From Vitrella brassicaformis CCMP3155 (Eukaryota; Protista; Chromerida): 54,996 bases of DNA. A model generated the notes under the pieces. It ran no database searches, was not told the origin of the DNA, and saw only the letters and a list, made by a program, of their open reading frames with translations. A program made the translations under genes and the position numbers. Each line of letters begins with the position of its first letter. Positions within the stretch are counted from its first letter, which is position 1. Of this stretch, positions 7,848 to 54,996 are shown piece by piece. The stretch is from assembly GCA_001179505.1 (NCBI GenBank), contig CDMY01000543.1, positions 1 through 54,996 of the forward strand, given 5' to 3'.

Positions 7848-10800
7848 TCACTGCAGCAGCTGGAACACTTCGATCTCATCGGCGAGAAACGCCCTCAACT
7901 TATGCTGATCCCATGCAGTCAGGCTCACCGTCTCCCATCTCACTCGCACCACACATCCCTCTGATGCCGAACAACTCAAGGTGTCTGGCGCCCACAGCCC
8001 CAGCCACTCGCGTGCAATCGTGTTCAATGTGTGAGAGCGGCCAACCATGAGCTTGGCACACGTGCTGTGGAGCTCGTTGTACCCTCGAGAGAGAGTCACA
8101 CACTGCGCTTTGAGGAAGGGGAATTGAAAAGTAAGCGGCGAGGGCCCTGTGGCAGTGAAGACGAGGGCGTCCGCGTCGTAGCTCTTGAAGGTGTGGCGAC
8201 GGCCTCTTTCTGGGTTGCGAGGAGGCTGCAGGCTGCTGGTGATGAGGCACCCGTCCATGTCTCCATTGGCCCGCACGAGGAACAGCAAGCAGCTTGCATC
8301 ACCCACACGATCGAGCATGTTGGTATAGGCAAATCCGTGCACAGTGGCCCTGTAGTAAAACACACCAAGGAGAGGAGAACAGACAAGAGAAGACAACCAT
8401 ACGCAGAGGTGATCGACGGCTCTTACTTGTAGAGCAGCTCGATGCCTGTGGTCTGTTTGCCCGTCGTCTGCAGTATGGCCATCAGCTGAGCGGGGGATGC
8501 GATCACAGAGGGACTGGGGAGGCACGGCCCATCGCCATGCAGCCGCAGCATGGGCTCCATCGCCACGCCGTGTCTCTCCATGGCCGCCATGAGTGGTGCC
8601 TTGAGCCGTCGAGGCGCATAGGGGGGGTCGACCACAGTCATAGGCGCCGCAGCACGCATGCGGCCTGCAAAGTCGCTAGTTAGCGCCTCGGCTGAGACAT
8701 TGGGAGGCAGAGAGGGGAAGTAGCGCTCGAACATCAAAGAGAGCTGGCGGACTGTCAGTTTCTTGTGCGCGCCTTCTGTGTTGAGCATATCATCGACTGA
8801 TGAGTGGGCAAACGCTGCCTTGCGTAACTGATGAACAGAGACACAATGCAAGGAAGAATGTGCAAGTAGGAACTTTGAGATCTGCTCCCTTACGGCTCCA
8901 ATGCGATCAGCCGCCAAGACGAAACGCAGCTGCCCATGCATGACGGTGATGCGGATCTGCTGGCTCCCAAAGCGGCGCTGTAAAGCGTTTTTGAGGGCAT
9001 CCAGATGGAAGTGCTCTCGCAGGACCACCGTCAGCTGCGAGATGGACTCAATCTCGAGAACCGACCAGATGCTCGACAAAATGAAGACGCCTGGGTTGAC
9101 GACATCGGCAGACGGCACTGAAATAAGCGATACACCCGATATAGTTCTCGTCCTCAGAGCAATGCGTGGGTGCAGGATCCATTTCGGGCCCCTTCGCACT
9201 TACCGTCGAGGTACATGACTAAGCTCTTGATCCGGGGGAGCTGGTGTCTATAATCGCCGGGTGTGATTCCCTCCCTCTCGTCCTCAGCTTTGATGAACTC
9301 GTGGCGACCCTCACACACGAAGCCCAGAGACACTTCATTAATTGCACCACGGCCAGCGTCAATGACAAGCTGACGCATCTCTGTCTCGGTCCCGCACATG
9401 GTCAAGCTATCTAGTAGTAGCAGCTGCTGTCTCCGACCTCCAAGCATCATCTTCGCCACCCCCAGGCCGATACGGTTCTTCACCACCAAACTTTGCACCG
9501 GCTCCAGTCTAATTTGGCTGACTGCTTTGAGCTCGGAAGGCTCATGTGCGATGCCATCAGCTGGCGAAGGCACACCGTCCGCACAGTCAATGGATATGCT
9601 GCAGCCTCTCACTCCTGGGCCCATAGTGTGGAAAGTCGGGCAGACGATGTGGCCATGTGAGGCGGCGAGGCGAACCTTGTACCCACTCAACAACGCATCG
9701 AGCAGTGGAAGGCTGCAGGCGGGCAGCTTGCCGAGGTCGACTTGGGTGTTGGCCAGCAGATGCGCGAGGGGGATGTCTCGCATCTCCGCGCCATAGGAAA
9801 GAACAGAGAAGGTGACCTTGGCCGATGGCGAGCAGGTCGCGTCGATGAATGAGGCGAGGGCCTTGAATCGTTGAGGAACAGCGAATGGCAGTCGTTGCGA
9901 TGAAGCGATACGGACAGGGCGTCGAGAGACTTTGAACAGCCGCGATCCACCAAACACTTCTGCAAGCAAAAGGACAATCGAAGCGAGAAGATGTCTATGT
10001 CATGGCCTCGCCGCCCGCCGGTCTGTGTCTCTTCCTCTTATGTCCTTGCCTGCAGGTCCCGGAGGCCGTCTCTGCAGGCATCACTCGACTCCATCGTATG
10101 GAGTTTGATGCCGGTAATCTTTCGAAGCCTGGCGAGAGGGCCCGGGCTCCCCCGCTGCCCCACAGGGATGCAATCTAGCAACTCAGCCAGCTGCGATGGC
10201 GCCGGCAGGCCCCCATCCAGATCGACGAGGGATCTCGTGGTGGTGACGAATGGCCTGATGTCTACGATCTCAGTGGGCGAATCTGGTACAGACAGAGAAA
10301 GCCGCTCGACAGCCGGCATTGTCCATCCGCGCCCCTCGATCACGAAGTGGCCACGTCTGACCCCTTTGACGTGTGTAAGGGTCGGGAAGCTGATGGACTG
10401 AGGAAGGGCGGCAGCAGGAGGGGTAGAATTGATGGTGGCCAGCTGAGTGATCTCCGGAAATCCGCTGTCTGGAAGCACTACCGGCTCGAAGGTCAGTGAC
10501 TTGAGCGAGCCCTCACTCATCGTTGTGGACTCACCGTTGATCGACCAGGGACGTCGATGTGACGATCAACGGTCGGATCTCCGCGACCTCAGAGACCGTG
10601 CATGGTGCAGACACCCGCTCGAAAGCCGGTGTTGTCCATCCCCGCCCATCACTCACGGAGAAGTTGCTGATGACGCCATTGACCTCTGTGGGGGCCGGCA
10701 GGCTGATGGACTGGGAAGGAGCGGCAGCAGGAGGGGCAGAGTGGATGGTGGTCAGCTGTTCAGCCTGGGGAAGTGCGAGGTCTGAAAACACCACCGACTC

Positions 10801-11631
10801 GAAGCTCAGTGACTTGAGCGAGCCCTCAGTGACTTGAGCGAGCCCTCGGCCGACGTGTTTCCCGGCCCCTCCCTGTCGCGCGCTGCCTGCCGTCCCAACG
10901 CATGACCCACCACCATCGCAATGACGTTGCCAAAGCACCATCCTGTTGCGAAATAATGCCAACCATCTGCTAAGCCATCTATTCCGGCAGGTGTGGCCGG
11001 AGAGCGATGGATGAGACACTTGAGGTTGATCATCTGTTTCCCGAGCTCGTATGCCGTCTTTGACGTCATGTCCTGCCAGAAACTCCGCCGTTGTGAGTTG
11101 CTGCAGTCGATGACGAGCTCGGTGTGGTGCTGCAGGACGGCTCCGCTGAGGGGGGAGGGCAGGCGCGGCTTGAGGCACCACACGGGATTCACCAACGCAT
11201 ACACACCGATGTGCAGCTCCCGAGGCTGCACACAAGGATAAAAGATGCAAAGGAATGGAATTCAATGCAGCCATCTCTTGTCAATGCATTCTTACCATTT
11301 GGATGCCCGACCAGCCCTGCATCCGAATGGCCTGTCGTTCAGCATCAAACCAACAGCAAACAGAAGAGGTCGCACACCCGTGCAACCATTGGATGATGTT
11401 GCTTGTGATCATTACCTTGACTGCCGCAACAGCCTCATTATCAGCCGCACCGCCACCAGGGGCATCATCGCCATCAGCAGACGGTGAATTGGCTTCAGCG
11501 TGGCCTTCAGCGTGGCCACCACTACCTGCAGAAATGAGATGCATCAGCAACAGCCGAAGAATGCACCATCAATGGCCCTCAGTACCTGGCTGCCGGGCGA
11601 CTGGCCGCCAGATCTGCCGCTTGCGAGCCAT
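7848..11631 (-). pseudogene. Family copy 1: F-box-like / LRR-like / linker / TLDc-like protein, frameshifted
   Basis: Shares motifs with copies 2-4: AIRMQGWSG|PRELHIGVYALVNPVWCLK, AYELGKQMINL, KCLVDRGCSKSLD, PPYAPRRLKAPLMAAMERHG, LLYK|ATVHGF, LADEIEVF. Lesions: 20-bp tandem duplication 10807-10846, out-of-frame ~310-bp internal duplication with stop at 10533-10531, and a 10-bp deletion near 9868. Confidence 0.85.
10807..10846. repeat. Perfect 20-bp tandem duplication CAGTGACTTGAGCGAGCCCT x2
   Basis: Read directly. It shifts the frame of family copy 1. Confidence 0.95.
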
Positions 11632-11970
11632 GCTTGAGCGTCAATAGGGATATCTACCACCCGGCCTACCCATCGTGAAAAACGGCGGCGGAACGGCGAG
11701 GGATTCTGCGAGCTCTCGGCCAGGAAAGCATAGCAAGAAAGACAAACGACGAAGCAGGGTGGACCTCTCGCAGCACCGGCAACCTCCTGCTTTTCGCGTA
11801 TCTGCTCGAATCTTCGGGTCATCGCTCTCCAGGTGAGGCAACGAGCAGCAAACGAGAGGGTGATCTGCCCAGGAGAAGAAGCAGCAGCATGATCATTCAA
11901 TGAAGCATCAGTAGCAATCATCTGTTGCTTTGTGTGTTGTGTTGTCTTGTGTTGTGTTGTGTGTTGTCAG

Positions 11971-13813
11971 ATGAAGCGTGGCTTCCTGTTGACAAAAGCC
12001 CAGCAGAGGGCCGCATCGACTCAGTCTGCCGAGGAATCAGTTAGTCCTGAGCCGAAACGAAAGGTACAACACACAATGACGTTCCTGAAATGCCCCTAAA
12101 TGACACAGTGCTCTGTCTGTGTTCACTCAGGCGAAGCCTCCTCCTCGTGTGTCTGCGGCCGTCAAACGGCACTATCCGCACCTCGAGCACGCCTGCGGCC
12201 GGCCACTTCTTCTGCTGCAAGCCTCCCTCGGCCCCTCGCTCTTCCTCACGCCCACCCCTGCCAAGGCCCGGTGTCTGGTCATCGACTGCGCCCACAGAAA
12301 CACCCGCCGTATGTGGGAAGCGGTTTCTCTCGAGGCGGCATACCAGTGGGGCATGGCTGCCAGGACTCTCGAGAAGATCGTCATCCGCTACCCAAAGCCA
12401 GCGGTTTCGCGGCGGGAGCGCAGCAATGCACCAATGTGGTGTATGGGCATGTGGGTGGCGATCCTAGAGGGGCATGCACACGGGCGGCAGCGGGCCGTCG
12501 CCGTGAAGAACAAGGCAGACAAGAAGGGCAAGGGCGAGATGGAGGCGACCGGCAGCAGCAGCAGCAGCAGCAGCAGCTCTCAAGCGGCGTCAGTGGCAGC
12601 TTGCGATGGGTCGCTGCGGGTGCTGGAGTTCGAGGCGGTGGACATGGGAGGGCCGCAGGAGTGGGAGAATGAGGACGACTACAATGTGCCATGCTCGGCC
12701 CCCTCTTCACAGCCCCTCCCTCCCAAGACTGATGGTGGTGTCCCTCCCCGCATCCTTCCCGTCCACCTGCCGGCCCTCACGGAGGTCCGCAACATGCCCG
12801 TCGAAGTCGCTGCTGTACGCATGGACCGCTCTTGGTGCGATCGATCGACACACTCCCACGAGAGTGAGGGATCAGGCGTCCCTGGTGTGTGTGTGTGTGT
12901 GTGTGTGTGCAGGCATACGCCTGGCATTCGAGTCTTCACCGTTGGCAGCCACCGCATCTACCCATCGGTCGAGCTGCTCTCGTGGGCGCGGACTAAGTCC
13001 CCGTTCCTGGAGCGCCACGTGGAGGAGCTCGCCCGCATCGTCCCCCGCGTCACCTATCAGGGCCGACCCGAACCACACCAGCCGGCCGCTACCGCCATGA
13101 CACGATCGACCTTCCCCCGAGCCGACTGCTTCCACCTAGCTGCCTATTCGCTGACGCGCTACACGATGCGCCGGGCGGTGTCCGTGGCGACGGCAATCGG
13201 CAAGACCTACATCCGCGTGTCTGGGGAGGAAGGGGAAGATGCGGCTCCCAGGGAATTGGCTGTCGAGTTCCTCAAGGCACTACAAGCAGCCCGGCTGAAC
13301 GAGGGCAGTGAGACGGCACTGGACGTCCACTATGCATTGTCGCTGGGCGGCGAGGACGTGGGATCCTTATGGGAGACGCATGCTGTCGAACTGTCCCCGA
13401 TCAGATGCCTGGAGCTGTGGATTACCGGTACGTACAGATACGTGGCTATGGAGAGGGTCCTGTGCATGTGTGTGGATGTGCGCCGCTCAGATACGTTTCC
13501 ACCGGGCGCCTGAGACAACGAGCGTCGGGCCTTCATCGAGACCGTCAGCAAGAACCTCCTGGCAATGCTCACGGCGTCCACCCGCCTCGGTGGCCATCGA
13601 GAGACGTACGTCCGCTTCTTCAGCCTCCGTGGAGATGTGCGTGACTATTTTGCGCGGCACCATCTGTCAGACGACTTCGACGAGACGCCTTACACATTCA
13701 CCTTTGATGGCACGTCCCTGAGCCTGCGCAGGCGCAGGTGGGGAAGCGAAGGAGGGAAGGGGAGGATGACTCATTGTCTTCATTGCCTCCTTTTGTGCAG
13801 GAGAGGCGTGTGA
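11971..13813 (+). pseudogene. Distant member of the LRR-like family, no TLDc end; one in-frame TGA at 13511-13513
   Basis: MKRGFLLTKAQ..|AKPPPRV. CLVIDCAHRNTRRMWEAVSLEAAYQWGMAARTLEKIVIRYP aligns with ELVIDYSNRRQRTFWESMAPQTAYELGKQMINLRCLIHRFP of copy 2, and it has HLPALTEV. The frame continues after DTFPPGA* as DNERRAFIETVSKNLLAML. Confidence 0.65.
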
Positions 13814-21163: not shown

Positions 21164-23387
21164 TCATTGCTCGTACTCGGTGTGCAGCACCTCCACGTCG
21201 TCAATCTGGAAGTGGTAGCTGCCTCCCAGCACCGCGTCGCCGTCAAACGTGTCAGACACAGCACCCTCGTACCCATCCGGCACCTGACAGACAGACAGAC
21301 ACCCATACACACACCATGCCAATAAATACCCTGTGTGGTGGCCTCCTTGCCTCCTTCCTTGTTGAGCTGCCTACGTCGTAGTGTGCGATGCCCTGCAGGC
21401 AGCTGCGGAGGTCCGTCGACTCATCCGCGCCGTCGCCCGCATTGGCCATCGTGTGTGCGAAGCGGAGGTACCCGTTGGTAAGTCGGTAGCTCTGGTGGAG
21501 CGCCTTGCCGATCACCTGCTTGACACATGGCGAATTCATTGACGGCATCCATCGTGTAAGATCTTCTCCTACCAGCTTGGCCTTGCCCATGTTAGCCGTG
21601 TCAAACGCGTCAGTGCCCGCCACCCACACACGGTGGCGGTTGGCGGCGATGGGAATCTTGGTGCAGCCCTCATCAAAATGACCTACACACACATACGCGC
21701 ACACACGCGATGCTATCGGTGCTGTGAAGCTTTGGCCGTGTGGCTGTTTCTGGATGGATGGATGGACCCACCTTCGAGTGAGAAGAAGAATACGGGGCAT
21801 TCGTAGGTGTTGACCGTCGTGGAGTCGGCCGGGGGCGTCAGACCGCCATCGACATGGCAGCCGAAGAGGTACTCGTCCTTGCGAATGATGAACGCGAGGC
21901 CCTTGGCGTCACCCACACACTCGAGCAGCTTGCTCAACGCCCAACCGTGCTCTCCACCTCTGCATCAGACACAGGCACACAACACGCATCAGTGTGACCA
22001 CTCCACCTGCTGCCCACTTTCCCCTTCTCTCTCGCTGCATGACCCATCTCACTCACGCACCTGTACAGAACTCTCACACTGGCCACCTTTTTGCTGTCGA
22101 CCATGCGGACCACATCCATGAGCTGCGATGCGGATGCCAGGCTGGAGGGGTTGGCCATGAGGGAGGCGCCCAGCTTGAGCATGGGCTCCAGCGTCATGCC
22201 GCAGCGCTCGACGACGAACTTGAGCGATCGGTTGAGGGGGCGGGGCGCGTGTGGGGGGTCGATGACGGTGCTGGGCGCGGACAGTCGCTGGCGGCGGGCG
22301 AAGTCGATGGCGCTCTGGAAATGCGATGGCGAGGTCTCAGTCACGTCGCCTACCCACCTGCAGGAGACACACACGGCACACAACACAATACAATACACCA
22401 AATGGACGGAATTGCCCCTCCCTCATTTGTTGCCTGCCTCCCTCTCCTCCGTTGTTCTCGTACGTGGTGTTGAATCGATGGTGCAGTGCCCGGTGAATGT
22501 TGGGCTGCGTCAGTGTGGCCTCGACCGTCGCACACAGGTGGGACCGCACCCTCACACACATGACCTCCCCCGTCCCACCCGTCGTGAGGTAGCCCCCTAT
22601 CGTCTCGTACAACTTGGTGACGGCCGCCGCGATGCGCTGCGTCTTCTTCAGGGCGCTCCTAAATGCATCGGCCGTGCTCTCCATGCCCGCATCCCTCGCC
22701 CACCGGAGGAACTGCCGCTCCTCCACCCCCTCCCCCGCATCCTCCCCCGCCGCCTCGGTCTCCATCTCCTCATCATCGTCAAGCACCAGCTTGTTGTCGA
22801 TCAGTGCCTCGTGGTAGAACCGGATGGACACATCCTCACTCTCGTCACCCGTCAGGTCGGTCACGAACCGCCCGTCGCCTTGCGCCATGGCGGCGCGGTC
22901 CTCCAACCACAAACCGAACGACGGACTGGCGTCCAGGAACGGCAGCGGGCGGCCGTCGGGTGTCGTCTGCTGGGCCTGAATGATCCGGGGGAGGGCGTCG
23001 GTGTGGCTGCAAACATAACAAGTAGTGACATAGAAAACGATGAGCCTCTCTCCACACCATTATGTGGACGTACCGGAGCAGCAGGATGGAGCAGTAGGTG
23101 TCGCGGATGCCGTCCATCTTCAATGCGTCGGCGCCAATGACCACCGTGCGCCCTCCAACGTTCACGTACATGTCCCCCGTCACCGCTTCAAGTGCGTTGT
23201 CGTCGAAGAGCGTGCCTCTGTGTCGGCCGATCTTGTCTGCGATGCCATCCACGACGCTCTTGACCTGGCTCATGCCGTCGGCTGATGAGGACGCTGCCGA
23301 ACGGGAGAGGGCCTCGCTGAGGGAGGAGGAGGCCTGCTGGGCGGTCTGGACAGAGGATTGCAGGATGCTGTTGAGTGATGACGCCAT
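21164..23387 (-). CDS. BTB/POZ (KCTD-like) x2 plus TLDc-like domain protein
   Basis: ATG 23387. BTB-like MYVNVGGRTVVIG...LPFLDASPSF; linker VIDPPHAPRPLNRSLKFVVERCGMTLEPMLKL; TLDc-like VLYR|GGEHGWALSKLLECVGDAKGLAFIIRKDEYLFGCHV...FFFSL...FQIDDVEVL. Stop 21166-21164. No lesion seen. Confidence 0.8.
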
Positions 23388-27080: not shown

Positions 27081-29684
27081 CTACTGCTGCATGGTGTCAT
27101 TCTCTCCGCCACCATTATCCTGCTGCTCGCCCTCCTCCTCCCCCTGCCCCGCCCCCTCTCCCGCCCCCTCGTGCAGTGTGTCCATGTCGATGTCCTCATC
27201 GCTAACGAACGACTCGTCCATCTCGCCGCTGGCGTGGCCGGGACGGTAAAGGAAGAACACACCGTCGCGCGTGAACTGACCTGACACACACACACACACA
27301 CGCACAGATGGATGGACGGATGGATGGATGGCGGTGGCTGACCGTCCTGTACCTACCGGTGTTGCAGAATAGGGTGCCCTCGTACGTTGTCTGGAAGGGC
27401 GACGTCATGTCACCCAACAACACCTGCTCACATAACACGTCATGGTATGGGTGCAGTTGTTTCTTCCCACTGCCTGGCTCACCGACCGACCCACCAACCC
27501 ACTTACTGTGTGCGGCATTGGGTAGAGCGCGAGTGTGTAGTCAAAGTCCCAGACAACCGAGCGCACCTTCAAAGGCACCGGACACACGTGGCCGCTGTCA
27601 GCCAAGGTGCGCACCACCTGACCAGTATCACCATGCACAGCACACGAATCAGATGAGGTCGGTCGGGTTAGGTCGGGTGGTTCTTCCCTCCCCATATATC
27701 CGAGTGACTGACCTCCATGTGTCTGTCCTTGTCCTTGGCGCCGGGGTCGAGGTTGGCGAAGAGAGCGAAGCGGTGCAGCAGGCGGTGCAGGTTCTGGCGA
27801 AACACCACGATCTCGCGGTGGAAATGACGCACCCTGCAGGGCACACACACAGACACGCACACACACACAGAGGGTGGGTGGATCGATGTGATGTGCCCCT
27901 CTCTCTCCGACCTGACTGACCTGCAGGGGTTGGTGGCCATCTCGACGCTGTCAGGGAAATGCACTGCACAGACAGACAAACAGACACGGGGTGACCATGC
28001 CATCGATGGCATGGCCACACAGATCAGATCCCATCACACTCAACACGAACACTTGGTGTGTCTGTCTGTCTGTCTGTGTGTCGCTTACTTCTGAGGTAGT
28101 CGGTGAGGTACTCTGCCAAAGGCGGCCGGGGCAGCACATCGCAGCCCGGATCGCTGGGGCCAGGCACGATGATCCATCTCGTATCTGATTGATGCACACA
28201 CACACACACATACACACACAGACATGTGGCGGTTGGTGAGAGTCTGTGTGTGTGTGTGTGTCGTGCTCACTCACTCTCGGTGAGTTGTGGGAAGGCCTGC
28301 ATGAGTTCTCGCAGCTTCTCGAAGCCGCCACGATACGCTCGCACACACGCGGCCGTCTGTGTGGACACACACACACACACACATAGGGAAGATGCGTGTG
28401 TGTGTGTGGAAATGCTGACTCTGAAGAATGGTTGAGAGGAGAAGTTGCCCATGAGGATGAAGCCAGTGGGAATACCGCCACTAATCACGAAACCTGACAC
28501 GCTCACACACACACACGCAACACACACGTGTGATGCCTCCCTCGAGGCCGCAAGCCACCTACCCACCCCGCTCCACCTTTGCACAAGTTGTGGAGTCTGC
28601 AGAATGTCTCCTCTCTGTCCAGATGGACCTCGCTGCACACCACAAATATCCCCCGCATGTGCGCCGGGCACCGGGCGTCCAACTCACGCATCAACTCCTG
28701 GACGAACGATTGATTGGTCCAACCAACCAACCAACCAACACACACACACACATTCACAGACGCGATACACGAGCATTTCAGCTGCTCTCTTCGCTTCGCA
28801 CCCTGTCCGCTTTGGACACTTTTGCGCCGAACAGGTTGGGCTCGCGTGGACAGTTGGCACAGCTCTCTGCGTCGCATGCACACACACATACAAACAATAC
28901 ATGAGGCCGAGATGGCGTAGTGTGGTGTGGTGTGGTGTGCGTCTTACCAGCCGGCGGGAGTGAGAGGGCACCCACATGCAGCACCTGGACGTTGGTTGAC
29001 ACGATCGTGTGTGGTGTTGATTGTGGGTGGCTGAGTGAGTCCCATGCACGCGCCCCCCCCCCCCCCCCNNNNNNNNNNNNNNNNNNNNNNNNNNNNNNNN
29101 NNNNNNNNNNNNNNNNNNNNNNNNNNNNNNNNNNNNNNNNNNNNNNNNNNNNNNNNNNNNNNNNNNNNNNNNNNNNNNNNNNNNNNNNNNNNNNNNNNNN
29201 NNNNNNNNNNNNNNNNNNNNNNNNNNNNNNNNNNNNNNNNNNNNNNNNNNNNNNNNNNNNNNNNNNNNNNNNNNNNNNNNNNNNNNNNNNNNNNNNNNNN
29301 NNNNNNNNNNNNNNNNNNNNNNNNNNNNNNNNNNNNNNNNNNNNNNNNNNNNNNNNNNNNNNNNNNNNCCCCCCCCCCCCCCCCCTCAGCCCACCCACTA
29401 CACTCACCCCGTTGTGGACTTCTCCTTCGGCCAGCACGAAGCTCTCCTCCATGATGTAGCCACCGATGCTGTGCGCCTGCGCACCACACACACGTTCACA
29501 CACACGTCGTGGTGGATGGATGGATCTGGGCAGCTCGCTGTACCGTACCCTGTCTAGGTTGAGTGGAATGTTTCTGTGCGGGTCTTCAAGGAAGAAGCGG
29601 TCCTCCTCCAGACGAGTCAGAAAGCCATACGTCAACTTCCTGCCTGACGAACGAAACACAACACAACACAAGACACCACACACA

Positions 29685-42509: not shown

Positions 42510-42874
42510 TCTGAGTCAGGCCTCCGACGATCGCGCTGCCGTCTCGCCGATCGAGAAGCGTGCCTCCTTTGGCCAAATCGCGCTCTTGAAAGGTAAAGAA
42601 TGCCCCAATCGCTCCACAGAGATCAGACTCGTCATTATTGTCACCCTCGGAGGATGGCGATGGACCGGGTGGATCATCAAGTGTTCGGACAGAAGAACTC
42701 CCCGTAGCACCGTCGCCACTCTTTGCACCATCCTCGCCACCATCGTCGTCAGTGAGGGAGGTGGTCTACCGCTGTGAAGGCCAAGGGACTCTCCCTCCCC
42801 AGGTAAGCGACGCCGAATGAATGAGCGAAAGGAGGACACGGCGAAATTGAGTCACGGATGTTGTTGTCGTACAG

Positions 42875-45800
42875 ATGAGACGGAGTAATCGCAAGATAGG
42901 GAACGCCCCCATCAGGAGGGCAGCCCGGGGTTCCTCGTCCTCGAAGGGTGATGGCAACATTGCATCTGGGTGTCCGGCCGATAACGAAGCAACCGCCGCT
43001 GTGTTCAGAGTAATAGACGACGATTCACTTGTATCACGAAGAATCTGTGCTCCTCTGCATTCACGCGTGCAGGCCATCCGGCTGCAGGGATGGTCCGGGC
43101 TCCGTCTGGTAAGCATGCATGGACAAACTCAGGATTCAACACCATACTGTAACTGTTCAATTTCGTCCCTGTGTGCAGCCTCGAGAGCTTCAGGTCGGTG
43201 TGTATGCGTTTGTCAATCCCGTGTGGTGCCTCAAGCCGCCCCTGCCCTCCCCACTCAGCGGAGCCGTTCTGCAGTACCACACCGAGGTCGTCATCGACTA
43301 CAGCAACAGACGCCAGAGAACCTTTTGGGAGTCGATGGCGCCGCAGACGGCGTACGAGCTCGGGAAACAGATGATCAACCTCAGATGTCTCATCCATCGC
43401 TTCCCAGAGACACCTGACGGAGCACAGGGGCTTCGAGCTGGCCAATATGTTCCCGCATATGGATGGTGCCTCGGGATTGTCATTGGACTCGTGGAGGGGC
43501 ATGTTAAGGGACGACAGGCAGCTCGCGAGGAGGAGGGATCGGCCACAACTATGAAAGAGGGGTCGTTACAGTCTTTGGTCTTTCAGGGGGTGGTGATTTC
43601 GACCCTTGGGCGCCAAGAGGCTGCGCGGCTTCACCGTATTATCAATTCTGCCGCTCTTGCTGCTGCCCCTTCTCGGTTTGTCGACCTTCCGGCTCTCACA
43701 GATGTTATCGGAGTCATTCACAGCGGCGACCCCTACACCCAGTCCGTGATCAAAGAGCGGAACTGGGCTATGACAGCCCTCCAGTGCTTATCTCGGGTGA
43801 ACACAGACAATGTGGCAAATCTTTGGCCGTTTGTCATGGTGACCCGGTCACTTGTCGAACTGAGTGCGATGCACCCCATGGCGCCATCGCAGCTGGTGAC
43901 GCTGCTAGGATGCATCCTGCCAGGGATGGAGCCGGAAAGTACGGGGCATCTTGCGTATCTCCGGGTGATTGGTAGCATCAAACTCTATGGAATTGAATCG
44001 GCAGATCTCAGGAACGGCATACGAGACATGCAGGTGGGTCAAAAAGCAAAGTAGCCGCGTAAGATGTAAAAAAGGAAAAGGGCATCTTATTGCTCCGCTT
44101 TGCAGAAGTCTCTGGTGGAACGCGGCTGCTCGAAGTCTCTCGATCTTCTCGCTTTCCGCGTGGATCGCAGCGACGCTCATTCACTCCTCCTCAACGACTA
44201 TGAGACGTTCAAGGCCCTCACCTCGCTGGTCGACGCGACATGCTCGCCATCTGGCCGTGTCGTCTTCGAAGCTTGCATTTCTGCCGACGACGATGTGCGA
44301 GACATTCCTCTCGCCCACCTTCTAGCCTACACGAGTTTTGGAAAGGTGCCTAGCTGCGGTCTGCCAATCCTCAGCGCCTTGCTAACGTGCTACGACCTGC
44401 GCATCTGGCCTGAGATTCCCCCCGATTGTCCTTCTGTCCAGAGCTACATCGATACAACATCGCCTTCTACTTACAGCTACGTGTGGACAGTCACAGAAGA
44501 CCAAGTTGCCAGACCACAGAACGGGCCCATCGACCTCAGTCTGATGGACGAGCTGATGTTCGACCGGCATGAGATCGACGGCGTGGTCTGCAGCATATCC
44601 ATCGAGTGCGCTGAGGGTTTCGCTCCGCCAGCGGATGCCATCCCGCCTGAGCCTCCGGAGCTGGAAGCACTCAGCCCATCTGGACTTGAGGGGGTGAAGG
44701 CTCTGATCGTCAAGCATCGCATCGGCCTGGGAGTGGCCAAGACGATCCTCAGCAAGGGCGCGCACTTGGAGAGCCTGGAGCTGATGGAGATGGGCATGAT
44801 GGACGTGCTGGCTCTGTTGGGGGGAATTCCCCTGCTGCAGATGCCGCAGAAGCTGAAGCTTGACTCCCTGCGGGCACAAGATGGACAAATTCAAGAGGGG
44901 CCCACCCAGCTGGACAGCGCATATGAGCTGATCGTCAACAAGAAGCTGCACGGGGTGAAGGAGCTCACGGCCAAGGGAGACTTCGCTTTGCGGCTTGCGG
45001 CCACCCTGAGACACCATATGCCATCGCTGGGCACCCTCACCATGTCCGGCGGCGAGACAGAGATGCGTCAGCTGCTCGTGGACGGGGGACGTGGGGCGAT
45101 CGCCCAGCTGTCTTTGAGATTTGTGCATGAGGGCGGCCGCGAGTTCATCAGGGCTGCCGACGAGAGCGAGGGCATCACACTGGGCGATTGGAGCGACCAA
45201 CTGCCCCACATCAACAGCCTGCTCATGTACCTAGACGGTAAGTGGCGAACAGATGTCAAGACCAACAATGCACCACTTGTGTATCTGTATGACGCCTCTC
45301 TGTCACCGTGTCTCGCTGATATCAGTGCCGCCTGCTGATGTTGTCGATCCGGGCGCCTTCATTCTGTCGAGCATCTGGTCGGTCCTCGAGATTGAGTCCA
45401 TCTCCGAGCTGACAGTCGTCCTGCGCCAGCGCTCCCATCTGGATGAGCTCAAGGCAGCTCTGAAGCGGCGGTTTGGGCCTGATCGACAGGAGAGGGGCCT
45501 CGTCACCACAAGCAGCCTGATCCTTTCATTTGAAGACATCAAGAAGGTGAGAAGAGACTCCTGTAAGCTCAGAAGAAACCCAGCGCACAAGGCATGTGTT
45601 TCTGTGACCTCAGTTGAACAAGGCGGCGTTTGCCTACTCGTTGAGGGCCGACATCGGATTCCTCGAGGCGCTGATAAAAACAGGAGACCCCCATCAAAGC
45701 CTGACGATGATCACCAGTCTGGCGGCCACCGTGAAGCGGCTGTCTTCGATTTTTGAGTATTACCTTCCCTCACACGATGCCAACATCGCAGCTGTGGCAC

Positions 45801-46626
45801 TCGCCAGTGACTTCGCCGGCCGCATGTGTGCCGCCACGCCCATGAGTGTGGTCGACCCCCCGTATGCTCCCCGACGGCTGAAGGCGCCACTGATGGCTGC
45901 GATGGAGAGACACGGCCTGGCGATGGAGCCCATGATGCGGCTGCATGGCGACGGGCCGGGCATCCCCAGTCCCTCTGTGATCGCATCCGCCGCTCAGCTG
46001 GTGGCTGTATTACGGAAGACGGGCAAAGACATTACAGGCATCCAACTGCTCTACAAGTAAGAGAGACACGAAAGATGCATCTGTCGGGTGCTGCGTGTAA
46101 TCCTCTCTTGTTGTTTTCGTCCTATGTCTGGTGTGGTGGCAGAGCGAGTGTGCACGGGTTTGCGTACACCGACATGCTCAGTCGCGTGGGTGATGCGAGC
46201 GGTCTCCTCTTCCTCACCCGCATGAATGCCTTCATTCATGGGTGCTTCATCAATGCCGATCTCCGTCCGCCACCGTCAGTTTCATCTTCAGCCGCCTTCA
46301 AGCAGTATCCGGCGGAAGTCCTGATCTTCAAAGCATCCGGCCATTCACAGCCCACCTTCCAGACATCTTCAGTGACGTCGAAGTGGGTCACTCTGTCGCG
46401 AGCAGATAACCATCCCCATGGCGTGGAGGCCAAACTGACTGTGGGCAAGGATGCGAGCGATCCATGTATACCGGAGTGGCTGGGGCTGTGGGCACCGGAC
46501 ACGCTGGGCTGGTCGGCATCGGAGGGATGCGTCGTGCGAGTGAGCTGGGAGAGGGGGGTGGGAGATGGTGAGGAAGACATCAATGCAATTCTTGCCGATG
46601 AGATAGAGGTGTTTCTCTACAAGTGA
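42875..46626 (+). CDS. Family copy 2: F-box-like / LRR-like / linker / TLDc-like protein, apparently intact
   Basis: ATG 42875 directly follows a 5'UTR intron. All exons join in phase: ..AVFR|AIRLQGWSGLRL|PRELQVGVYAF...DMQ|KSLVERG...YLD|VPPADV...KK|LNKAAF...LLYK|ASVHGF...LADEIEVFLYK*. Confidence 0.85.
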
Positions 46627-46629
46627 GGA

Positions 46630-46959
46630 AGACAGCGACAGTGGGTCTGCCATTTTCTCTATGTAAAACTTCTCCTCCTTTCCGTTTCTTAAGTGACTTG
46701 TTGCAAGGCGTCTGAGCATGGACATCGTACCTTTCCGTCATCCTTGACGCCGACGCACGTCATTGTCAAGCAAGCCATCAATACGGCGGTAGGTGCTCAG
46801 CTTGTGGTCGGCGGGCACGGGATGGACAGACTGTGGCTCTGGGAATCTGCGGTGGAAGGGCTATGTCTGGTGCGAGTCGGATGGGCTTTCTGGGAGGGGA
46901 GGCTTGAGTCGCTGTTTGCCGATGAGATGGAAGTGCTACACTTGCAGACAGAGGCGTGA
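46630..46959 (+). pseudogene. Orphan, internally deleted TLDc-like terminal exon with remnant intron
   Basis: Starts KASEHG after a CAA where the acceptor CAG is expected. Upstream GTGGGTCTGCCAT matches the pre-TLDc intron of copy 3. Ends GAQLVVG..LWLWE..VRVGWAFWEGRLESLFADEMEVL, resembling copy 4. Confidence 0.75.
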
Positions 46960-47283
46960 ATGGGGCGGGGCGATGTTACACTTGTTGCATTGTGTGGTCC
47001 GGTGAAGCGTGACAGTGAAGGGTGGGGTCGAGTCTCATATCTTTCGTGGGTTCAGGAGGACAGCTTTGTTTGTACGGTCTGGATGTACGGATGACATAAC
47101 TTCTCGCTCACACCAATGACTATCAAAAACAGTGCACGAAACCTGAATGGCCCTCAGGAACATTCAAATTGCATCCACTGTCGATGAGACATCACTCGTG
47201 CCCTCGACGATAGCGTCCTTCCTTGTTCGGAATGGATGTGTCTCCAGATTGCATCACATCACATCCACGCCACTGCCCCCCCT

Positions 47284-50200
47284 TCACGGTCCTGTCTGCA
47301 GACGCATCACCTCGATCTCATCGGCAAGCATTGATTCCGTCCGCCTCCCCCACATGACCTGCACCTGGCACCGCTCTGGAACCAACCCCTGTGCCGGCGC
47401 TGGATCAGGCGCCCACAGCCCCAGCCCTTCTTCGATGCGCGCCCCGCGTGTGACCGGCGGCCCCACCAATAGCTTGGTCTCGGTCAATATGGTCGGTCGT
47501 GAGACCGTGACATACTGCAACGTGAGGGATGCGGATTGGAAGACGGGCTGTGAGGGACCGGAGGCCTTGAAGACGAGGGCGCCTACCGAATACTGGTTGA
47601 AGGTGGGCGCATCTGGCAGCTGGGGGGGCGGTAGCAGGCTGCCGCTGATGAAGCAGCCGTTAACGGAGCCATTCGCCGCTCGGATAAGGATCAGCAAGCG
47701 GCCCGCATCGTCCACATGATTGAGCATGTCGGCGAACCCATAACCGTGCTCAGACGCCCTGCAGGAAATGAAAAGAATATGGCAGACCCACAGTTGGTGT
47801 ATCTTTTACTTGTAGAGCAGTTGGGTGCCTGTAATGTCTTTGCCCGTCGTCTGCAGTATGGCCATCAGCTGAGCGGCGGATGTGATCACAGAGGGACTGG
47901 GGATGCACGGCCCATCACCATACAGCTTGAGCATAGGCTCCATCGCCAGACCGTGTCGCTGCATGGCCGCCATGAGTGGTGCCTTCAGCCGTCGAGGAGC
48001 ATACGGGGGGTCGACGACAGTCATGAGGGCAGCAGCACTCATGCGGCCGGCGAAGTCGCTGGCAAGCGCCTCGACTGCAGTGTTGCTGTCGAGTGAGGGA
48101 AAGTACCGATTGAGCATTGAGGACAGCCGCTTGAGGGTCAACCCCTTCGGCATCGTATGTTGTTGATTTGCCTCCAGCACGGCTTTGAGAGTGTCGGCGG
48201 CCGAGGAGTGCGCGAACACGGCCTTGCGCATCTGGATCATCAAACTGAAACACGAAAAGGAGAGGAATGGTCTGCCGTAGGTCGATTCGGATCTCTCTCT
48301 CTCTCTCCTTACTGCCTGAATGTCGTCAGTCGTCAGAACAAAGCGCTTTTCGGCAGCCATCACTGTACCAAGGGTCTGGCCGAATCGGCGCTCCATGGCC
48401 ATCTGGACGCCACGCAGGTGAGATGAGACATCGGGGCTATCGGGCAGGACCACTGTCAGGGCGTTCGCATCCATTTCGAGCAGCGACCAGATGGACGACA
48501 GAATGAAGATGCCAGCGTCAGCAACGTTGGCAGACGGCACTGAACGGGGGCAGACATGGAGACACAGAGACACGTATAACAGAGTAATGCGGCATGATGA
48601 GGGCATTGTGTTGCTTACCGTCTAGATGGACAAGTACGCTGCGGATGCTGGGCATTCGGTCCTTCCAATCGCCCAATGTGATCCCTTCCCTCTCGTCCTC
48701 GGCCTTGATGAACTCATGGCGGCCCTCAGATGTGAAGCCCAGACACAGCCGGTTGGGCACCCCGGGGCCTGCGTTGACGAGCGCCTCGCGCACTTGCCCC
48801 TCATCCCCGTACACAATCAGCATCTCCAGCATCGGCATGTGGGGTCTCATGGTGGCGACAAGCCGCATGGCAAGCTCCCCCTTGACAAGTAGCGTCTTAA
48901 CCCGTTGACCCTTCAGCTTGACGGGCAGCTGACTGGCCTGCCGTCCATCGTCTGGCATGAAAGACTCCAGAGTCACCTCTCGGGGCATCTTGAACTCATT
49001 GATGCGATCGAGCAGGCCAAGCACGTCAGTCCCGGTCATGTGCATCAGCCGCAGCTTCTCGAGGCGCGCTCCTTTTCCCACCACCGCCTTGGCCACACCC
49101 AATCCAATACGGCTCTTCACTGTGAGGTTTTTCACGAGGTTGAGTCCCTCAGGCTTGAAGGCGTTCAGTTCCGGGGGCTCAGGGGGCCTGGCGTCGGCTG
49201 GCGGGGCCCAGCCATCGGCACACTCGATGGATATGCTGAATCCCGTTGAATGTCTGTCGGTAGAGTTGGCTCGCGTGGACGATGAAGGCCGCCCAAGCCA
49301 TTCGAGGACCAGCTCGTTCATTCTGGCCTTGTCGCTGTCATCGGATGCTCCCTGCGATCGGTCCAGTTGGTCGGGTGTGATCGTCCACACGTAGTGGCAT
49401 GTCGGACTCCATTGGACGTCGCCGGCGCTCTTGGTAAAGGGACTGAAGTTTATGGGGAGGCTCTCTGACTCAACTCGCAGATTGTACATCTGCAGCGCAG
49501 CATTGAGGAGGTGGAGGCTGCAGGCGGGCAGCTTGCCGAAGTCGAAGAGAGTGTAAGCCAGCAGCTTGTTCAGGGACATGGTGAGAGGGATGTCTCGGTC
49601 TTCGGCGGACGATGAGTGGACAGTAAAGTGCAATGTAGCCAGTGGCGAGCAGATGGCGTCGACAAATTTAGCCAGGACCTTGAATGTCGCGTAATCGTTG
49701 AGGAGAGTCGAATGGCAGTCGCTTCGATGCACCTCTATTGACAGGAGGTTGAGAGACTTCCAGCAGCCTCGATCAATCAAACACTTCTGGAATCAGAACA
49801 CAATCGAGGCAAAGGATGGCAATGTCGTGGCCCCTACCCCCCGCTTTCTGTGTCCTTCCATTCTGTGGCACCTGCAAATCACGGATGCCATCTCTGATCT
49901 CAGTCACTTCGATGCCGTAGAGCTTGATGGAGCTGACCATCCGAAGCTTTGCGAGAGGGCTGCAGTGCAATCCAGCTGCCCCGCGCTGCTCCAGAGGGAT
50001 GCAATCCAGCAGCTCAGCCATCTGGGGTGGCGTTAGGCTGGGCACTCTCATTTTGACAAGGCACCTCGTTGTGGTGATGAATGGCTTAACGTGCTCCATC
50101 TCGACCGTGCATTCATCTCTCACGCGCTGGAGGGCTGGGATGGCCCATCCCCGCCCATCAATCATAGAGCGAGGGTTGACGCCTTTGTGGTTGACACCTT

Positions 50201-50998
50201 TGACTTCCGTGAGGGCCGGCAAGTTGATGGATTGCAAAGGGTCGACAGCAGGAGGCTCAGACCTGATCTTATCAAGGCGCCGGATCTCCTGTAAGCCGAT
50301 GTCCCGAACTGGCACCGGTTCGAAGGCCAGTGACTTGAGCGACCCCTCGGACATTGTGGTAAGCGGACCCTCCTTGTCTCTCGCCAGTTGGCGTCCCATC
50401 ACATGGCCCTCCACAAGTGCGACAACGATGCCACGGCACCATCCAGCTGCGGCATAATGCAAGCCAGCCTCCAACCCTTCTGCCCCATCAGGTGTCCGCG
50501 GGAAGCGGCGAATGAGACATTTGAGGTTGATCATCTGCTGGCCGAGCTCGTACGCGGTCTGCGGGGACATCGTCTCCCAGAAGGTTCTCTGCCGTGTGTG
50601 GGTGTAGTCGATGACGAGCTCGGTGTGGTGCTGCAGCACGATGCCGCTGAGTGGGGAGGGCAGGGGCGGCTTGAGGCACCATAAGGGATTGACAAACGCA
50701 TAGAGACCGACGTGCAGCTCTCGAGGCTGCACACCGAGAAATCACAGACGAAAGAATTCAACGCGGAGTGAGGCGGATCCTCCGTTCTCCGTTGTCGAGT
50801 CATGCCCTGTTCACCCGCCCCTCTTACCACTCGGAGGCCGGACCAGCCCTGCAGCCGAATGGCCTGCATGCAACAGGCAGCAAGGCCACAAACGCCTCAG
50901 GCGATCTGCTTTGGTGGCAGTGGCACTGGTGGTGGTGTTACCTTGTAGATGGCCTTTGTGGCTTCGTTGTGCGTCCTTCTTTCATCAACTGCGTCCAT
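47284..50998 (-). CDS. Family copy 3: F-box-like / LRR-like / linker / TLDc-like protein, apparently intact
   Basis: Same exon series and phases as copy 2: NEATKAIYK|AIRLQGWSGLRV|PRELHVGLYAF...|KCLIDRG...|VPSANV...|MRKAVF...LLYK|ASEHGY...LADEIEVM. Start assigned to ATG 50998 because of an upstream in-frame stop. Confidence 0.82.
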
Positions 50999-51497
50999 CT
51001 TTCACAGTGTCACCCTGTTGAAGAGCCTCCGCATCACCACAAGTTGAACATGACAAGCAAGGAGGAAAGAAAACTGAAGAACAGCAGTAGAACAGCACTT
51101 CCCGCCCCCCGCGAGTTGATCGGCGAGAGGGGGGCGCGATCTCGTTCATTCATTCATTCCTTCATGAAGTTTCCCTCCTCTGTCGGGCTGGCGGGACTCG
51201 CGTACGCTTTCGCCGTTCCCCGAAATGCATCCAAAGCCCCCAAGCTCGCATGCAAGCCCCCACAAGGGAACCGAAGGAAGTGCTAGCTTGGCCCATATTA
51301 CGGACAAACAAACAAAGAAACACTTTGTTTCGTAAGAGCGTGCCACGCTCAGCAAGCTTCGCGAGTCCCGAATTCCCCCCTCTCCGTGAAAATGCGTCCA
51401 TGGAGAGGTCTGTGTGGAGAGGCATCCCTTCGACGTCGTCGTGTGCATCGAATGCACTCTGTCGGTGTGTGCTCGATGCAGTGCGCGCGATGCTGCA

Positions 51498-51531
51498 CGA
51501 CAGCCATGTGAGCGACAGCCATGTGAGCGAC
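51498..51531. repeat. 15-bp tandem duplication CGACAGCCATGTGAG x2.3, intergenic
   Basis: Read directly. Confidence 0.9.
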
Positions 51532-51676
51532 GAACAAAACCAGCAAGCCTGATTGAACAGGCGTGTACACTGCACGAAGTCTTAGTGGTCCTCAGGGGCA
51601 TTCAAAAAATCACTCGGACGTGCCCTCGAGAACAGCGTCTCCACGTCGCATCGAATCTCAGTCCACTGCCCGCCGT

Positions 51677-54600
51677 TCACGCACCCTGCAACTGCATCAC
51701 CTCCACCTCATCGGCAAGCATCGTTTCCACCCGCCCTTCCCACGCAGCCCATCCGACTCGCGCCAGACACGAGGCCCCTATTAGGCCCCCTACTGCCAGC
51801 TCCCACAGGCACAGCCAGTCCGCCCCTTGCCTGCCGACCACGAGCTGAGGGCCCACTGCCCTATCGTTTGGGGCGGCGGCTTCCGCAATCACCCGCGTCG
51901 ACATCAGGGAGGACGCAAAGGCGGGCTGGGAGGATCCGGAGGCCATGAAGATAACGCCAAGCGCCGTTCGAATCTGGGGAGGGGGCCGCAGGCTGGTGTC
52001 GATGAAGAAGCCGTGTGTGTCTCCATTCGCGCGGACGAGGAACAGCAGGGGGGTCGCATGGCCAACACGACAGAGCATGTCAGTGTACGCAAAGCCGTGC
52101 ACCGTCGCCCTACATGCATACACACGAGAGGAGAACGAGAGAACAAAATCAGACGCCTCAGGGGCCAGACTATCCACTTGGTGTTTCTCTTACTTGTAGA
52201 GCGGCTGGATGCCTGTGATGTCTTTGCCCGTCTTCCGTAGTACGGCCATTAGCTGAGCGGCGGATGCGATCACAGAGGGACTGGGGATGCCCGGCCCATC
52301 GCCATGAAGCCGCATCATGGGCTCCATCGCCAGGCCGTGTCTCTCCATCGCTGCAAGGAGTGGCGCCTTCAGACACCGAGGAGCATATGGGGGGTCGATC
52401 ACAGTCATGGGCGTGGCAGCACTAATGCGGCCGGCGAAGTCACAAGCCAGTATGTCCGTCGAGGCCTCAGTAGCAAGCGCAGCAAGAGAGGGGAGGTATC
52501 CATGCAACTGGGCCGAAGGGCAGGCAGTGCTATGGGAGCAGGCAAATGCTGCCTTCCGCATCTGGGCAATGGAGACACAGAAAAGACGAACGGTATAGTT
52601 TCCTGATACCTTCCATGCCAATACGACCAAGGCCTACCGCTTGGATGTCGTTACTCGTCAAAACAAGGTACTTGCGATTCGTCATTGCCCTCACCATGCC
52701 GCCCATCTGATCCAAGATCTGATCAGGCCCGAATCGCCTCTCGACGGCCAGCTTGAGGGCATCCAGATGGGAATGTTGGGGCAGGACCACTATCAGCTCA
52801 GTGATGGACTCGATCTCAAGAAGCGACCAAATGCTCCCCAGAATGAAGGCGCCTGGATCGACAATGTGGGCCGACGGCACTGAAAACCAGCGAGACACAG
52901 AGGTGCAACTTGGTCAGCAAGTTGATTCTTCTCCATTTCTTCGCCACTTACCATCCAAGTGCATGAGTATGCTCTTGATTGAGGGCAGTTGGTCCTTCCA
53001 ATCGCCCAGTGTGATCCCTTCCCTCTCGTCCTCGGCCTTGATGAACTCATGGATGAGACGAGCGGGATTCCTAGTCAGAGACATGAAGCCGAGAGACAGC
53101 CGGTTGATCGCACCACGATCTCCGGCCATGAGCGCCTGACGCATCTCTGTCTCGCTGCCGCACACTGTGAGCATATCCAGTGATGGCATGTGCCGTTTCA
53201 GCCTTGCCACTAGTCGTATCGCCACCTCTCCCTTGGCCATGAGCTCCTTCACCCCTTGCAGCTTCTTGTTGACGATCAACGCATATGCGCTGTCCAGCTG
53301 GGCCACTTGCTGTTGAATCTCTCCATCTTGTGCCCGCAAGGAGTCAAGCTTCAGCCTCTGCGGCATCTGCACGGAGGAAATTCCCTCCAGCAGAGCCAGC
53401 ACGTCCATCGCGCCCATGTCCATCAGCACCAGGCTCTCTAAGTGCGCACCCTTTGTCAGGACCATCTTAGCCACTCCAAGCCCCATACGGTGCTTGACGA
53501 TCAGAGCCTTCACCCCCTCAAGTCCAGATGGGCTGAGTGCTCTCAGCTCCGGAGGCTCAGGTGGGATGGCATCCGCTGGCGGAGAGAAACCCTCAGCACA
53601 CTCGATGCAAAAAATGCAATCCGCATGCCCATTCCCACAGCCTCCTAATGTCAGCTCCTCCATCAGGCTGAGATCGATGGGGCCGTTCTGTGGTCTGGCA
53701 ACATGGTCTTCTGTGACCGTCCAAACATAGTGGAATGCGGAAGGTGGCGCTGGCTGCGTGTAGCTCTCAATCGAAGGACAATCGTAGGGTGGCTCAGGCC
53801 AATCCTCTTCGGGCTTCATACACAAGTTGTGATGTGTCAGCAAGGTATTGAGGATCGGCAGACCGCAGCTAGGCACCTTGCCGAATCGCGTGTATGCTAG
53901 AAGGTGGGCGAGAGGGATGTCTCCCACGTCGTCGGTAGGAAAGCCAAGAGAAAAGACGACATCGCCGGATGGCGAGCAGGTCGCGTCGATGAATGTGGCG
54001 AGGGCCTTGAACGTCGCATAGTCGTTGAGGATCAGCGAATGGCAGTCGCTGCGATCCACGATGAAACACAGGTAATCGAGCGACTTCGAGCAGCCACGAT
54101 CGACCAAACATTTCTGAAACCAGAAGACAAGCGTGGCATCGTTTCCTCTTTCCTTTTGGAGCCACCTGAAGGTCTTGTAGGCCGTCTCTGAGATCGGTCG
54201 ATGCAATCCCACAGAGTTTGATGCTAATAATCACCCGGAGGTACGCAAGAGGCCCCGGACTCCCCGGCTCCCCCGTCTCGATCCAGTGTAGCAGCCAAGC
54301 CAGCTGCGATGGCGCCATAGGAAACACCGCGTTCAGTTCGACAAGCGACCGCGTCACCAAAAGATATGGCCAAAGGTTTGTCACGTCGAATGTGCTCAAC
54401 TCAGACAAGCGCTGGAGGGCTCCCATAACCCAATTCCGGTCATCGATGATGGAGTGATCAGAGTGGTCGGCTTCGTGGATAAGTCCTACAACATCCGTGA
54501 GAGCCGGAAGATCGACAAAACGAGAAGGGGGGGCAGCAAGAGGGATGTAATTGATACGGCTAAGTCGCTCAGCCTCAGGAAGCAGAAGGTCTGGAATCAC

Positions 54601-54996
54601 CTTCCCCTCGAAGACCAATATTTGTAACGAGCCCTCACTCATCGTGGTCCCCGGACCCTCCTTCTCTCTCGCCGCCTGTCGTCCCGACACATGACCCTCC
54701 ACAAGCCCGATGACGAGCCCCAGGCACCATGTAACCACTGCGGCATGGTGGCCATCTGCCCAGTCAGCTGTACGTGGATAGCGATGGACGAGACACTTCA
54801 AGTTGATCATTTGTTTCCCGAGCTCGTACGCCGTCTGCGGGGACATCGTCTCCCAGAAGATTCTCTGCCGAGTGTTGCTATAGTCGACGACGAGCTCGGT
54901 GTGGTGCTGCAGAACGGCTCCACTGAGTGGGGAGGGCAGGGGCGGCTTGAGGCACCACACGGGATTGACAAACGCATACACACCGACCTGAAGCTC
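51677..54996 (-). CDS. Family copy 4: F-box-like / LRR-like / linker / TLDc-like protein, 5' end outside the window
   Basis: ELQVGVYAFVNPVWCLKPPLP at the window edge. Same exon series down to PLYK|ATVHGF...LADEVEVMQLQGA*. No stop or frameshift seen in the visible exons. Confidence 0.82.

Follow-up and report, generated by a model that had tools for sequence, protein, structure and literature searches.

Clustered genes of Vitrella brassicaformis predicted to join an irregular leucine-rich repeat solenoid to a C-terminal TLDc domain

To our knowledge, the only role established by experiment for TLDc domains is that of a partner of the V-ATPase, in a handful of architectures; every characterised TLDc protein that we are aware of (Oxr1, NCOA7, mEAK-7, Rtc5) binds this enzyme. 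Nor do we know of a characterised FBXL protein, with an F-box in front of leucine-rich repeats (LRRs), that carries a TLDc domain at its C-terminus, and a full-text literature search for papers joining FBXL and TLDc gave none describing such a fusion. Here we describe four paralogous genes, copies 1 to 4, in a window of 54,996 nucleotides that is the whole contig C543 (CDMY01000543.1) of the chromerid alga Vitrella brassicaformis CCMP3155, a free-living relative of apicomplexan parasites. An original prediction, made from the letters alone, had read these genes as fast-evolving adaptors with an F-box-like N-terminus, an LRR-like middle and a TLDc-like end.

Judging from the sequence, the product of each gene would be cytosolic, about 1,100 residues long and without recognisable signal peptide; in it, a short variable N-terminus and a helix motif are followed by an LRR solenoid (about 650 residues), a linker (about 190 residues) and the C-terminal TLDc domain. 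The explanation that we prefer is that the four genes belong to a family of about 20 genes found only in Vitrella, whose products act as two-ended adaptors; taken whole, it has an even chance of being right. Its structural part alone is highly probable, whereas the adaptor mechanism is tentative and has the balance of probability somewhat against it. According to this mechanism the LRR solenoid would bind one protein partner and the TLDc domain would dock on a second, by analogy with characterised TLDc proteins most likely the V1 sector of the V-ATPase, with the conserved N-terminal helix as a possible further docking element. Given that all characterised TLDc proteins known to us bind the V-ATPase, this enzyme is the default candidate partner.

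Domain architecture and range of the family

The four paralogues lie where they had been predicted and show the same series of coding blocks, at 7848-11631 (-), 42875-46626 (+), 47284-50998 (-) and 51677-54996 (-). When the exon peptides of copy 2 are used as queries in a local tblastn, exons 2 to 6 all appear in order at 7863-11502 (-), 42875-46623 (+), 47305-50971 (-) and 51695-54996 (-), the other copies being 35-80% identical to copy 2 exon by exon, and DNA repeats within the window join the same four places. Copy 1 is broken and copy 4 is truncated where the contig stops, which leaves copies 2 (+) and 3 (-) intact; the annotated products of the intact copies are P0002 (copy 2, 1160 residues) and P0004 (copy 3, 1106 residues). 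The exon structure is indeed common to the copies: all introns are GT..AG, at homologous positions and in homologous phases in copies 2, 3 and 4 (splice sites of copy 2 were read from the sequence, and those of copies 3 and 4 are the sole or best GT..AG pairs returned by a script), and exon order and intron phases recur in at least 12 loci on further contigs. For the searches of spliced sequences we used the public proteins (P0002, P0004 and others); our own joined model of copy 2 served only for frame, length and exon peptides.

Copy 2 begins with a variable N-terminal coding exon at 42875-43009, which matches P0002 and is matched over 42872-43009, with no mismatches, by a contig of the sequencing run X1; the public model P0002 itself begins further upstream than 42875. 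An extra intron, 43010-43072, seen in P0002, P0004 and the spliced contig, leaves a mini-exon of 36 nucleotides at 43073-43108 that encodes AIRLQGWSGLRL, is bounded by X1 joints and is kept in six annotated paralogues. Exon 2 (43179-44033, 285 residues) carries the conserved LPREL motif and then the first part of the putative solenoid, and exon 3 (44106-45237, 377 residues) its second, family-specific part. Exon 4 (45326-45546, 73 residues) is linker with no Pfam match, exon 5 (45614-46056, 147 residues) holds the rest of the linker and the first 35 or so TLDc positions, ending in LLYK, and exon 6 (46143-46626, 160 residues), the most divergent exon, holds the remainder of the TLDc domain. The motifs on which the original prediction was built are in place: exon 2 opens with LPRELxVGVYAFVNPVWCLK, exon 3 contains LESLELM, LKLDSL and LGTLTMS, LLYK and A.VHGF span the last intron, and ADEIEV stands at the C-terminus.

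The assignment of a TLDc domain to the last two exons is borne out by Pfam on spliced proteins and by hhalign of exon 6. Because the intron after LLYK splits the domain, single exon-6 peptides match Pfam TLD (PF07534) only below threshold (E 0.05-0.1), TLD being the only or best Pfam family for 12 of the 15 family exon-6 peptides. With the exons joined, seven public proteins match TLD at E 8e-7 to 2e-4; P0004 (29.5 bits), P0006 (28.8 bits) and P0003 (27.6 bits) exceed the gathering cut-off of 24.5 bits, and P0002, in which the match begins at residue 972, lies just under it with 23.2 bits. The second half of the domain is very divergent, and the Pfam alignment goes no further than about position 113 of 170; exon 6 was therefore compared by hhalign with 16 other exons of the genome whose matches to Pfam TLD span positions of about 35-170 and exceed the cut-off. 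The probability is 99.3% (E 2e-20) over 145 columns, covering query positions 1-157 of 158, and the family's ADEIEV aligns with dEiEVw of the other Vitrella TLDc exons. In the Vitrella genome Pfam TLD matches at least 130 exon-level places, many of which have an intron where the family has its own after LLYK (Pfam position 34-35); since a large share of the TLD matches start at profile position 34-35, this intron position is common to most Vitrella TLDc genes. TLDc homology is thus sound at the level at which it was sought, that of sequence.

That the middle of the protein is of LRR type holds at the level of fold, and the solenoid would extend over most of exon 2 rather than exon 3 alone. An AlphaFold2 model of exon 2 (residues 85-395 of P0002; alignment of 54 rows, including 40 distant paralogues) has short strands alternating with helices, a mean predicted local distance difference test (pLDDT) score of 83.8 and a predicted template modelling (pTM) score of 0.81. 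Exon 3, modelled from an alignment of 20 rows, shows the same alternation (pLDDT 79.0, pTM 0.79). In VIA, an exhaustive structural comparison against 48,161 solved chains, the best 50 rows are all LRR proteins for either model. The exon 2 model finds FBXL5 and FBXL17 on top at Z 7.7, then SDS22, FBXL2 and RanGAP; the exon 3 model finds CD14 (Z 8.9), LRRC8 (8.3) and the LRR of NRG1A (8.1). In accordance, Foldseek relates the exon 3 model to TIR1/COI1 (E 8e-4) and the exon 2 model to weak NLRP and RNase-inhibitor rows, and an ESM-Atlas shape search with exon 2 gives template modelling (TM) scores of 0.47-0.54 to F-box/LRR, RNase-inhibitor, NLRP and COI1 clusters. The irregular repeats contain insertions of 20-50 residues and present no regular LxxLxLxxN/C pattern to LRR profiles. 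Profile searches of exons 2 and 3 against solved-structure sequences gave nothing below E 0.1; PhnZ and OmpA rows in the solved-structure profile searches were set aside as chance. Protein-language-model look-alikes were at noise level for exon 2 (0.80), and for exon 3 they were weak LRR-type leads (0.86-0.87) with which the folds later agreed. The models thus support, at fold level, an irregular LRR solenoid of about 650 residues made by exons 2 and 3 together.

How far does the family extend? In a six-frame translation of the genome exon 3 matches about 20 loci and exon 2 at least 135 places, about 20 of them close and more than 100 distant, the latter over residues of about 20-280. Nearly all of the 16 fetched stretches with close loci show the full order of exons 2 to 6. 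The loci are clustered, with four copies in the window, five or six on contig C341 and two on C568. In at least 10 of them the reading frame stays open for about 1,100 codons over eight exons with conserved splice sites, and in roughly half there are stops or truncations within exons that the intact copies keep whole. An exon 3 profile run against 1.84 billion representative proteins gave 23 matches, about 20 of which are the family; outside it this search gave only the three weakest rows, which are unrelated repeat proteins. A word search with full-length P0002 returned matches that are all from Vitrella brassicaformis CCMP3155, several members of the family being automatically named 'TLDc domain-containing protein' in UniProt. 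Since neither search finds a family member in another organism, the lineage restriction that had been proposed stands, and on the data now available this family is confined to Vitrella brassicaformis.

With its distant matches, exon 2 belongs to a Vitrella superfamily that exceeds 100 genes, many of them single open frames of 600-700 residues (examples L057-L063). A Pfam search of six of these long frames and of the related neighbour gene described below recognised no family, and no TLDc domain lies near the distant genes. Their homology to the modelled exon 2 makes it probable that they too encode irregular LRR proteins.

Evolution, transcription and neighbouring genes

Evolution of the family proves to be fairly fast, as had been suspected, and mosaic, to judge from per-exon ratios of nonsynonymous to synonymous substitution rates (dN/dS) and from nearest relatives that shift along the gene. 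The median pairwise dN/dS per exon is 0.34-0.50 at a median dS of 0.5-0.9; selection is relaxed, not neutral. Exons 6 (TLDc) and 3 diverge most, with a median proportion of nonsynonymous differences (pN) of 0.35 and 0.33, and exons 4 and 5 least (0.18 and 0.20). Along single gene pairs dS varies five- to ten-fold, and the nearest relative differs between exons. Copies 2 and 4 are nearest to each other in exons 2-3 (dS 0.4-0.5), but in exon 6 their dS exceeds 1; exon 4 of copy 2 hardly differs from its counterpart in a gene on C341 (dS 0.07); and the partner of locus L016 in exons 5-6 differs from its partner in exons 2-3. Birth and death of copies, with exchange between them at the level of exons, is shown. 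A few 50-codon LRR windows in young pairs have dN>=dS, resting on few changes. Chance or a repeat artefact as the source of the gene structure was rejected, on the grounds of dN/dS <1, of splice sites conserved in more than 12 loci and of a spliced transcript contig.

This contig comes from X1, one of four sequencing runs that hold the copy 2 stretch; the other three are DNA-like, with contigs continuous through the copy 2 introns, and X1 is of RNA type (its kind is guessed and its depth low). The X1 contig, 456 nucleotides long, has three GT..AG joints (42799/42802>42872/42875, 43009>43073 and 43107/8>43178/9), which fall exactly at the three predicted 5' introns of copy 2. Its 5' 138 nucleotides match copy 2 exactly, and its exon-2 part has 19 mismatches in 224 nucleotides, so that the contig was probably assembled as a chimera with a paralogue. 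X1 also holds exact pieces in exon 3 (44600-44814) and exon 6 of copy 2, which is very probably transcribed and spliced. There is no X1 contig over the 3' half of copy 3, which is not evidence of silence. An exact X1 contig of 331 nucleotides lies between copies 2 and 3, at 46694-47024, and may be the 3' untranslated region of either of these convergent genes.

Copy 3, intact (47284-50863, minus strand; P0004), consists of the mini-exon at 50828-50863 and exons 2 to 6 at 49872-50726, 48619-49786, 48313-48539, 47810-48231 and 47284-47758. Copy 4 (51677-54996, minus strand; public partial protein P0001) has lost its 5' end at the contig end, and its exons 2 to 6 lie at 54166-54996, 52952-54113, 52638-52879, 52194-52561 and 51677-52109. 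The G+C content is about 58% along the whole window. Its sole run of N, an assembly gap of 300 N at 29069-29368 between copies 1 and 2, touches no family exon and so affects only the stated spacing of the copies and no gene model.

The disrupted copy 1 (7848-11631, minus strand; mini-exon 11296-11331) carries an exact tandem duplication of 20 nucleotides at 10808-10847, which shifts the frame into a TGA at 10806-10808. A tandem duplication of 313 nucleotides (10296-10515 / 10609-10828, units 76% alike) brings a second frame change, with a stop at 10531-10533. About 105 residues are missing from exon 3, and the public annotation covers only the 3' 568 residues (P0011). Both duplications, as assembled, begin at the same GAGGGCTCGCTCAAGTCACTGA word, the 313-nucleotide one being the older; their lengths sum to 333 nucleotides, a multiple of three, yet in-frame stops remain.

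Head-to-head with copy 1 lies an open frame of 464 residues with a distant exon-2-type LRR domain (12119-13513, plus strand). Paralogues of this gene, 82-90% identical, stand head-to-head with family members on contigs C688 and C284 (stretches L006 5601-6299 + and L001 5746-6500 +), and it seems that the divergent pair of genes was duplicated as one unit. An open frame at 6830-7414 (-), immediately downstream of copy 1, has a translational-GTPase G1 motif, TypA/BipA-like, and is an ordinary housekeeping neighbour. Elsewhere in the window a BTB-type gene with a TLDc module is found at 21764-22311 (-), reaching about 23465. By tblastn its 21764-22311 stretch is 35-40% identical to the C-terminal part of family exon 5 and to exon 6, a likeness that includes the pre-TLDc stretch PPHAPRPL...EPMLKL and an LLYK-type intron; the last 84 residues of copy 2 exon 5 match it at 22063-22311.

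The conserved leader and rival explanations

The leader motif, AIRLQGWSGL / LPRELxVGVYAFVNPVW, is strongly conserved; no other part of the gene is as constrained, and dN is about 0.05 over the first 50 codons of exon 2 in two independent pairs. Among distant members of the exon-2-type superfamily, L027 and L039 retain a leader variant, PRE....IYGY..PPW. It is in this leader that the original prediction saw a likeness to the F-box pattern, and an F-box was not upheld here. Neither in exon peptides nor in the seven spliced public proteins does Pfam find an F-box (PF00646 / PF12937) at E<=1, although with the same Pfam model at least 14 ordinary F-boxes are recognised in the Vitrella genome, none of them at family loci or beside exon-2-type domains. 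A helix-1 motif, LPxEL...V.AF, is common to the leader and the Vitrella F-boxes in the expected register, but hhalign of the family N-terminus with these F-boxes gives a probability of 5.3% over 17 columns, helix 1 only. The invariant Trp follows the Pro by 15 residues in the family versus about 26 in F-boxes, some 11 too early, and a proline-rich stretch, KPPLPSPL, follows helix 1 where helices 2 and 3 should be. Given this spacing and this stretch, helix 2 of an F-box would be missing. In the exon 2 model three helices, 5-19, 28-38 and 51-57, precede the first strand, with a pLDDT there of only 54-73. The idea of a ubiquitin ligase rests on an 11-residue helix motif, at which the resemblance ends; an F-box assignment is not supported by sequence comparison, and the family should not be filed or annotated under that label.

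Could the leader nevertheless be a cut-down docking helix for a cullin adaptor? We regard this as unlikely, and equally so the fuller proposal of a substrate receptor of the Skp1-cullin-F-box (SCF) type or of another cullin-RING ligase, in which the LPREL helix, as a degenerate F-box or BC-box-like element, would recruit Skp1 or Elongin C and the LRR part, the TLDc domain or both would pick substrates. Its proponents could point to the alignment of the leader in register with Vitrella F-box helix 1, LPPDVAHIVLAFLP against LPRELHVGVYAFVNP, to the position of the leader directly before the LRR solenoid, as in FBXL proteins, to the BTB gene, in which the TLDc module is joined to another cullin adaptor, and to the presence of a normal Skp1 (P0024) in Vitrella. 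In VIA the first two rows are FBXL5 and FBXL17, with other LRR proteins at the same score, and six of the 10 atlas rows are F-box/LRR clusters (TM 0.50-0.54 over residues 1-308); F-box/LRR proteins come up in the fold searches at scores equal to those of other LRR proteins, and such rows may reflect an RNase-inhibitor-like LRR subtype alone. The proposal is opposed by the lack of a Pfam F-box match, the poor profile alignment and spacing, and the low confidence of the 50 N-terminal model residues. A complex prediction for Skp1 with the N-terminal 311 residues scored 0.10 versus a mark of 0.34 and counts neither way, the fold of the partner being uncertain and our own alignments having gone unused. 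A BC-box for Elongin C, LxxxCxxx[VIL], fits the LPREL helix loosely in spacing (L...V...V), with the small residue replaced; it was not adopted in its own right and is kept as a variant of the cullin proposal.

There are two further explanations. The first, a diversifying recognition repertoire, akin to innate immunity or to self/non-self recognition, whose LRR and TLDc surfaces vary and whose clustered genes would evolve by gene conversion as well as by birth and death, is likewise unlikely as the main explanation but compatible with the adaptor one. The tandem clusters, the broken loci, the mosaic kinship between copies, the greatest divergence in exons 6 and 3 and the few windows with dN>=dS would all suit it. 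Set against these, whole-exon dN/dS gives no overall positive selection, the windows come without a site model, and no ligand or pathogen is known for Vitrella. That the genes are instead decaying, functionless duplicates, a recently amplified segment turning into pseudogenes, would account for the broken copy 1 and the stops in several further loci, and no member has a transcriptome (MMETSP) source on record. We hold it to be very improbable in view of the long open frames and splice sites kept in at least 10 loci, of dN/dS well under 1 at an appreciable dS, of the constrained leader and of the spliced contig for copy 2.

The explanation as adaptors, which we prefer, has points against it as well. 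Comparison of the exon 6 profile or of the C-terminal 230-residue profile with solved-chain sequences gave nothing below E 0.1, and no Pfam LRR family matches at E<=1 in exon peptides, spliced proteins or frames of the distant superfamily. Structural scores are middling (Z 6-9, TM about 0.5), so that they give a fold class and no subfamily, and transcript support is thin, coming from one run whose contig is possibly chimeric. With at least 130 TLDc exons in the genome, the domain may have gained targets beyond the V-ATPase; the scale of this radiation in Vitrella makes new targets likely. Carried further, TLDc would in Vitrella be a general diversifying recognition module, no longer a partner of the V-ATPase, wired to cullin-RING heads that are either BTB or a cut-down F-box-like helix with LRR. 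We consider this improbable, and if it were true it would amount to a lineage-specific repertoire of ubiquitin-ligase receptors behaving like an innate recognition system. Under the adaptor explanation, identification of the partners of both ends would show to what uses a radiating TLDc domain is put.

Comparison with known systems

Both kinds of domain are known, and the TLDc domain is already annotated automatically; the LRR part is missed by sequence models. The original prediction knew of no characterisation of the architecture, and with this our searches agree: the combination of LRR with TLDc occurs in none of the searched papers, and neither the exon 3 profile search nor the P0002 word search finds it in another organism.

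FBXL proteins (Skp2, FBXL2, FBXL5, FBXL17, TIR1, COI1) have, like the family, an N-terminal helical element just before an alpha/beta LRR solenoid; they are among the best structural matches of the family models and have the helix-1 motif in common with it. The family differs in having no F-box detectable by Pfam or by profile-profile comparison, helices 2-3 being replaced by a shorter proline-rich stretch, in its irregular repeats with long insertions, which match no LRR hidden Markov model, and in its C-terminal TLDc domain. Clustered LRR receptors (plant NLRs, animal NLRPs, VLRs) resemble the family in their LRR solenoid, tandem clusters, pseudogenes and exchange between copies, and the LRRs of NLRP and NRG1 are among its structural matches. 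Unlike them, the family has no NACHT/NB-ARC, TIR or other signalling domain, and positive selection is not demonstrated for it.

With the characterised TLDc proteins (Oxr1/OXR1, NCOA7, TBC1D24, mEAK-7/TLDC1, Rtc5) the family has in common a C-terminal TLDc domain (PF07534) on an unrelated N-terminal module. In those proteins this module is LysM/GRAM, TBC or a myristoylated region, whereas in the family it would be the LRR solenoid of some 650 residues; moreover, the second half of the family domain is very divergent, and the family profile matches no solved TLDc chain. The other TLDc genes of Vitrella itself have the same layout of TLDc exons, with the intron at the same Pfam position. From these the family is set apart by its N-terminal module, an LRR solenoid with a leader of its own, and its 20 or so exon-3 loci form a separate family among them.

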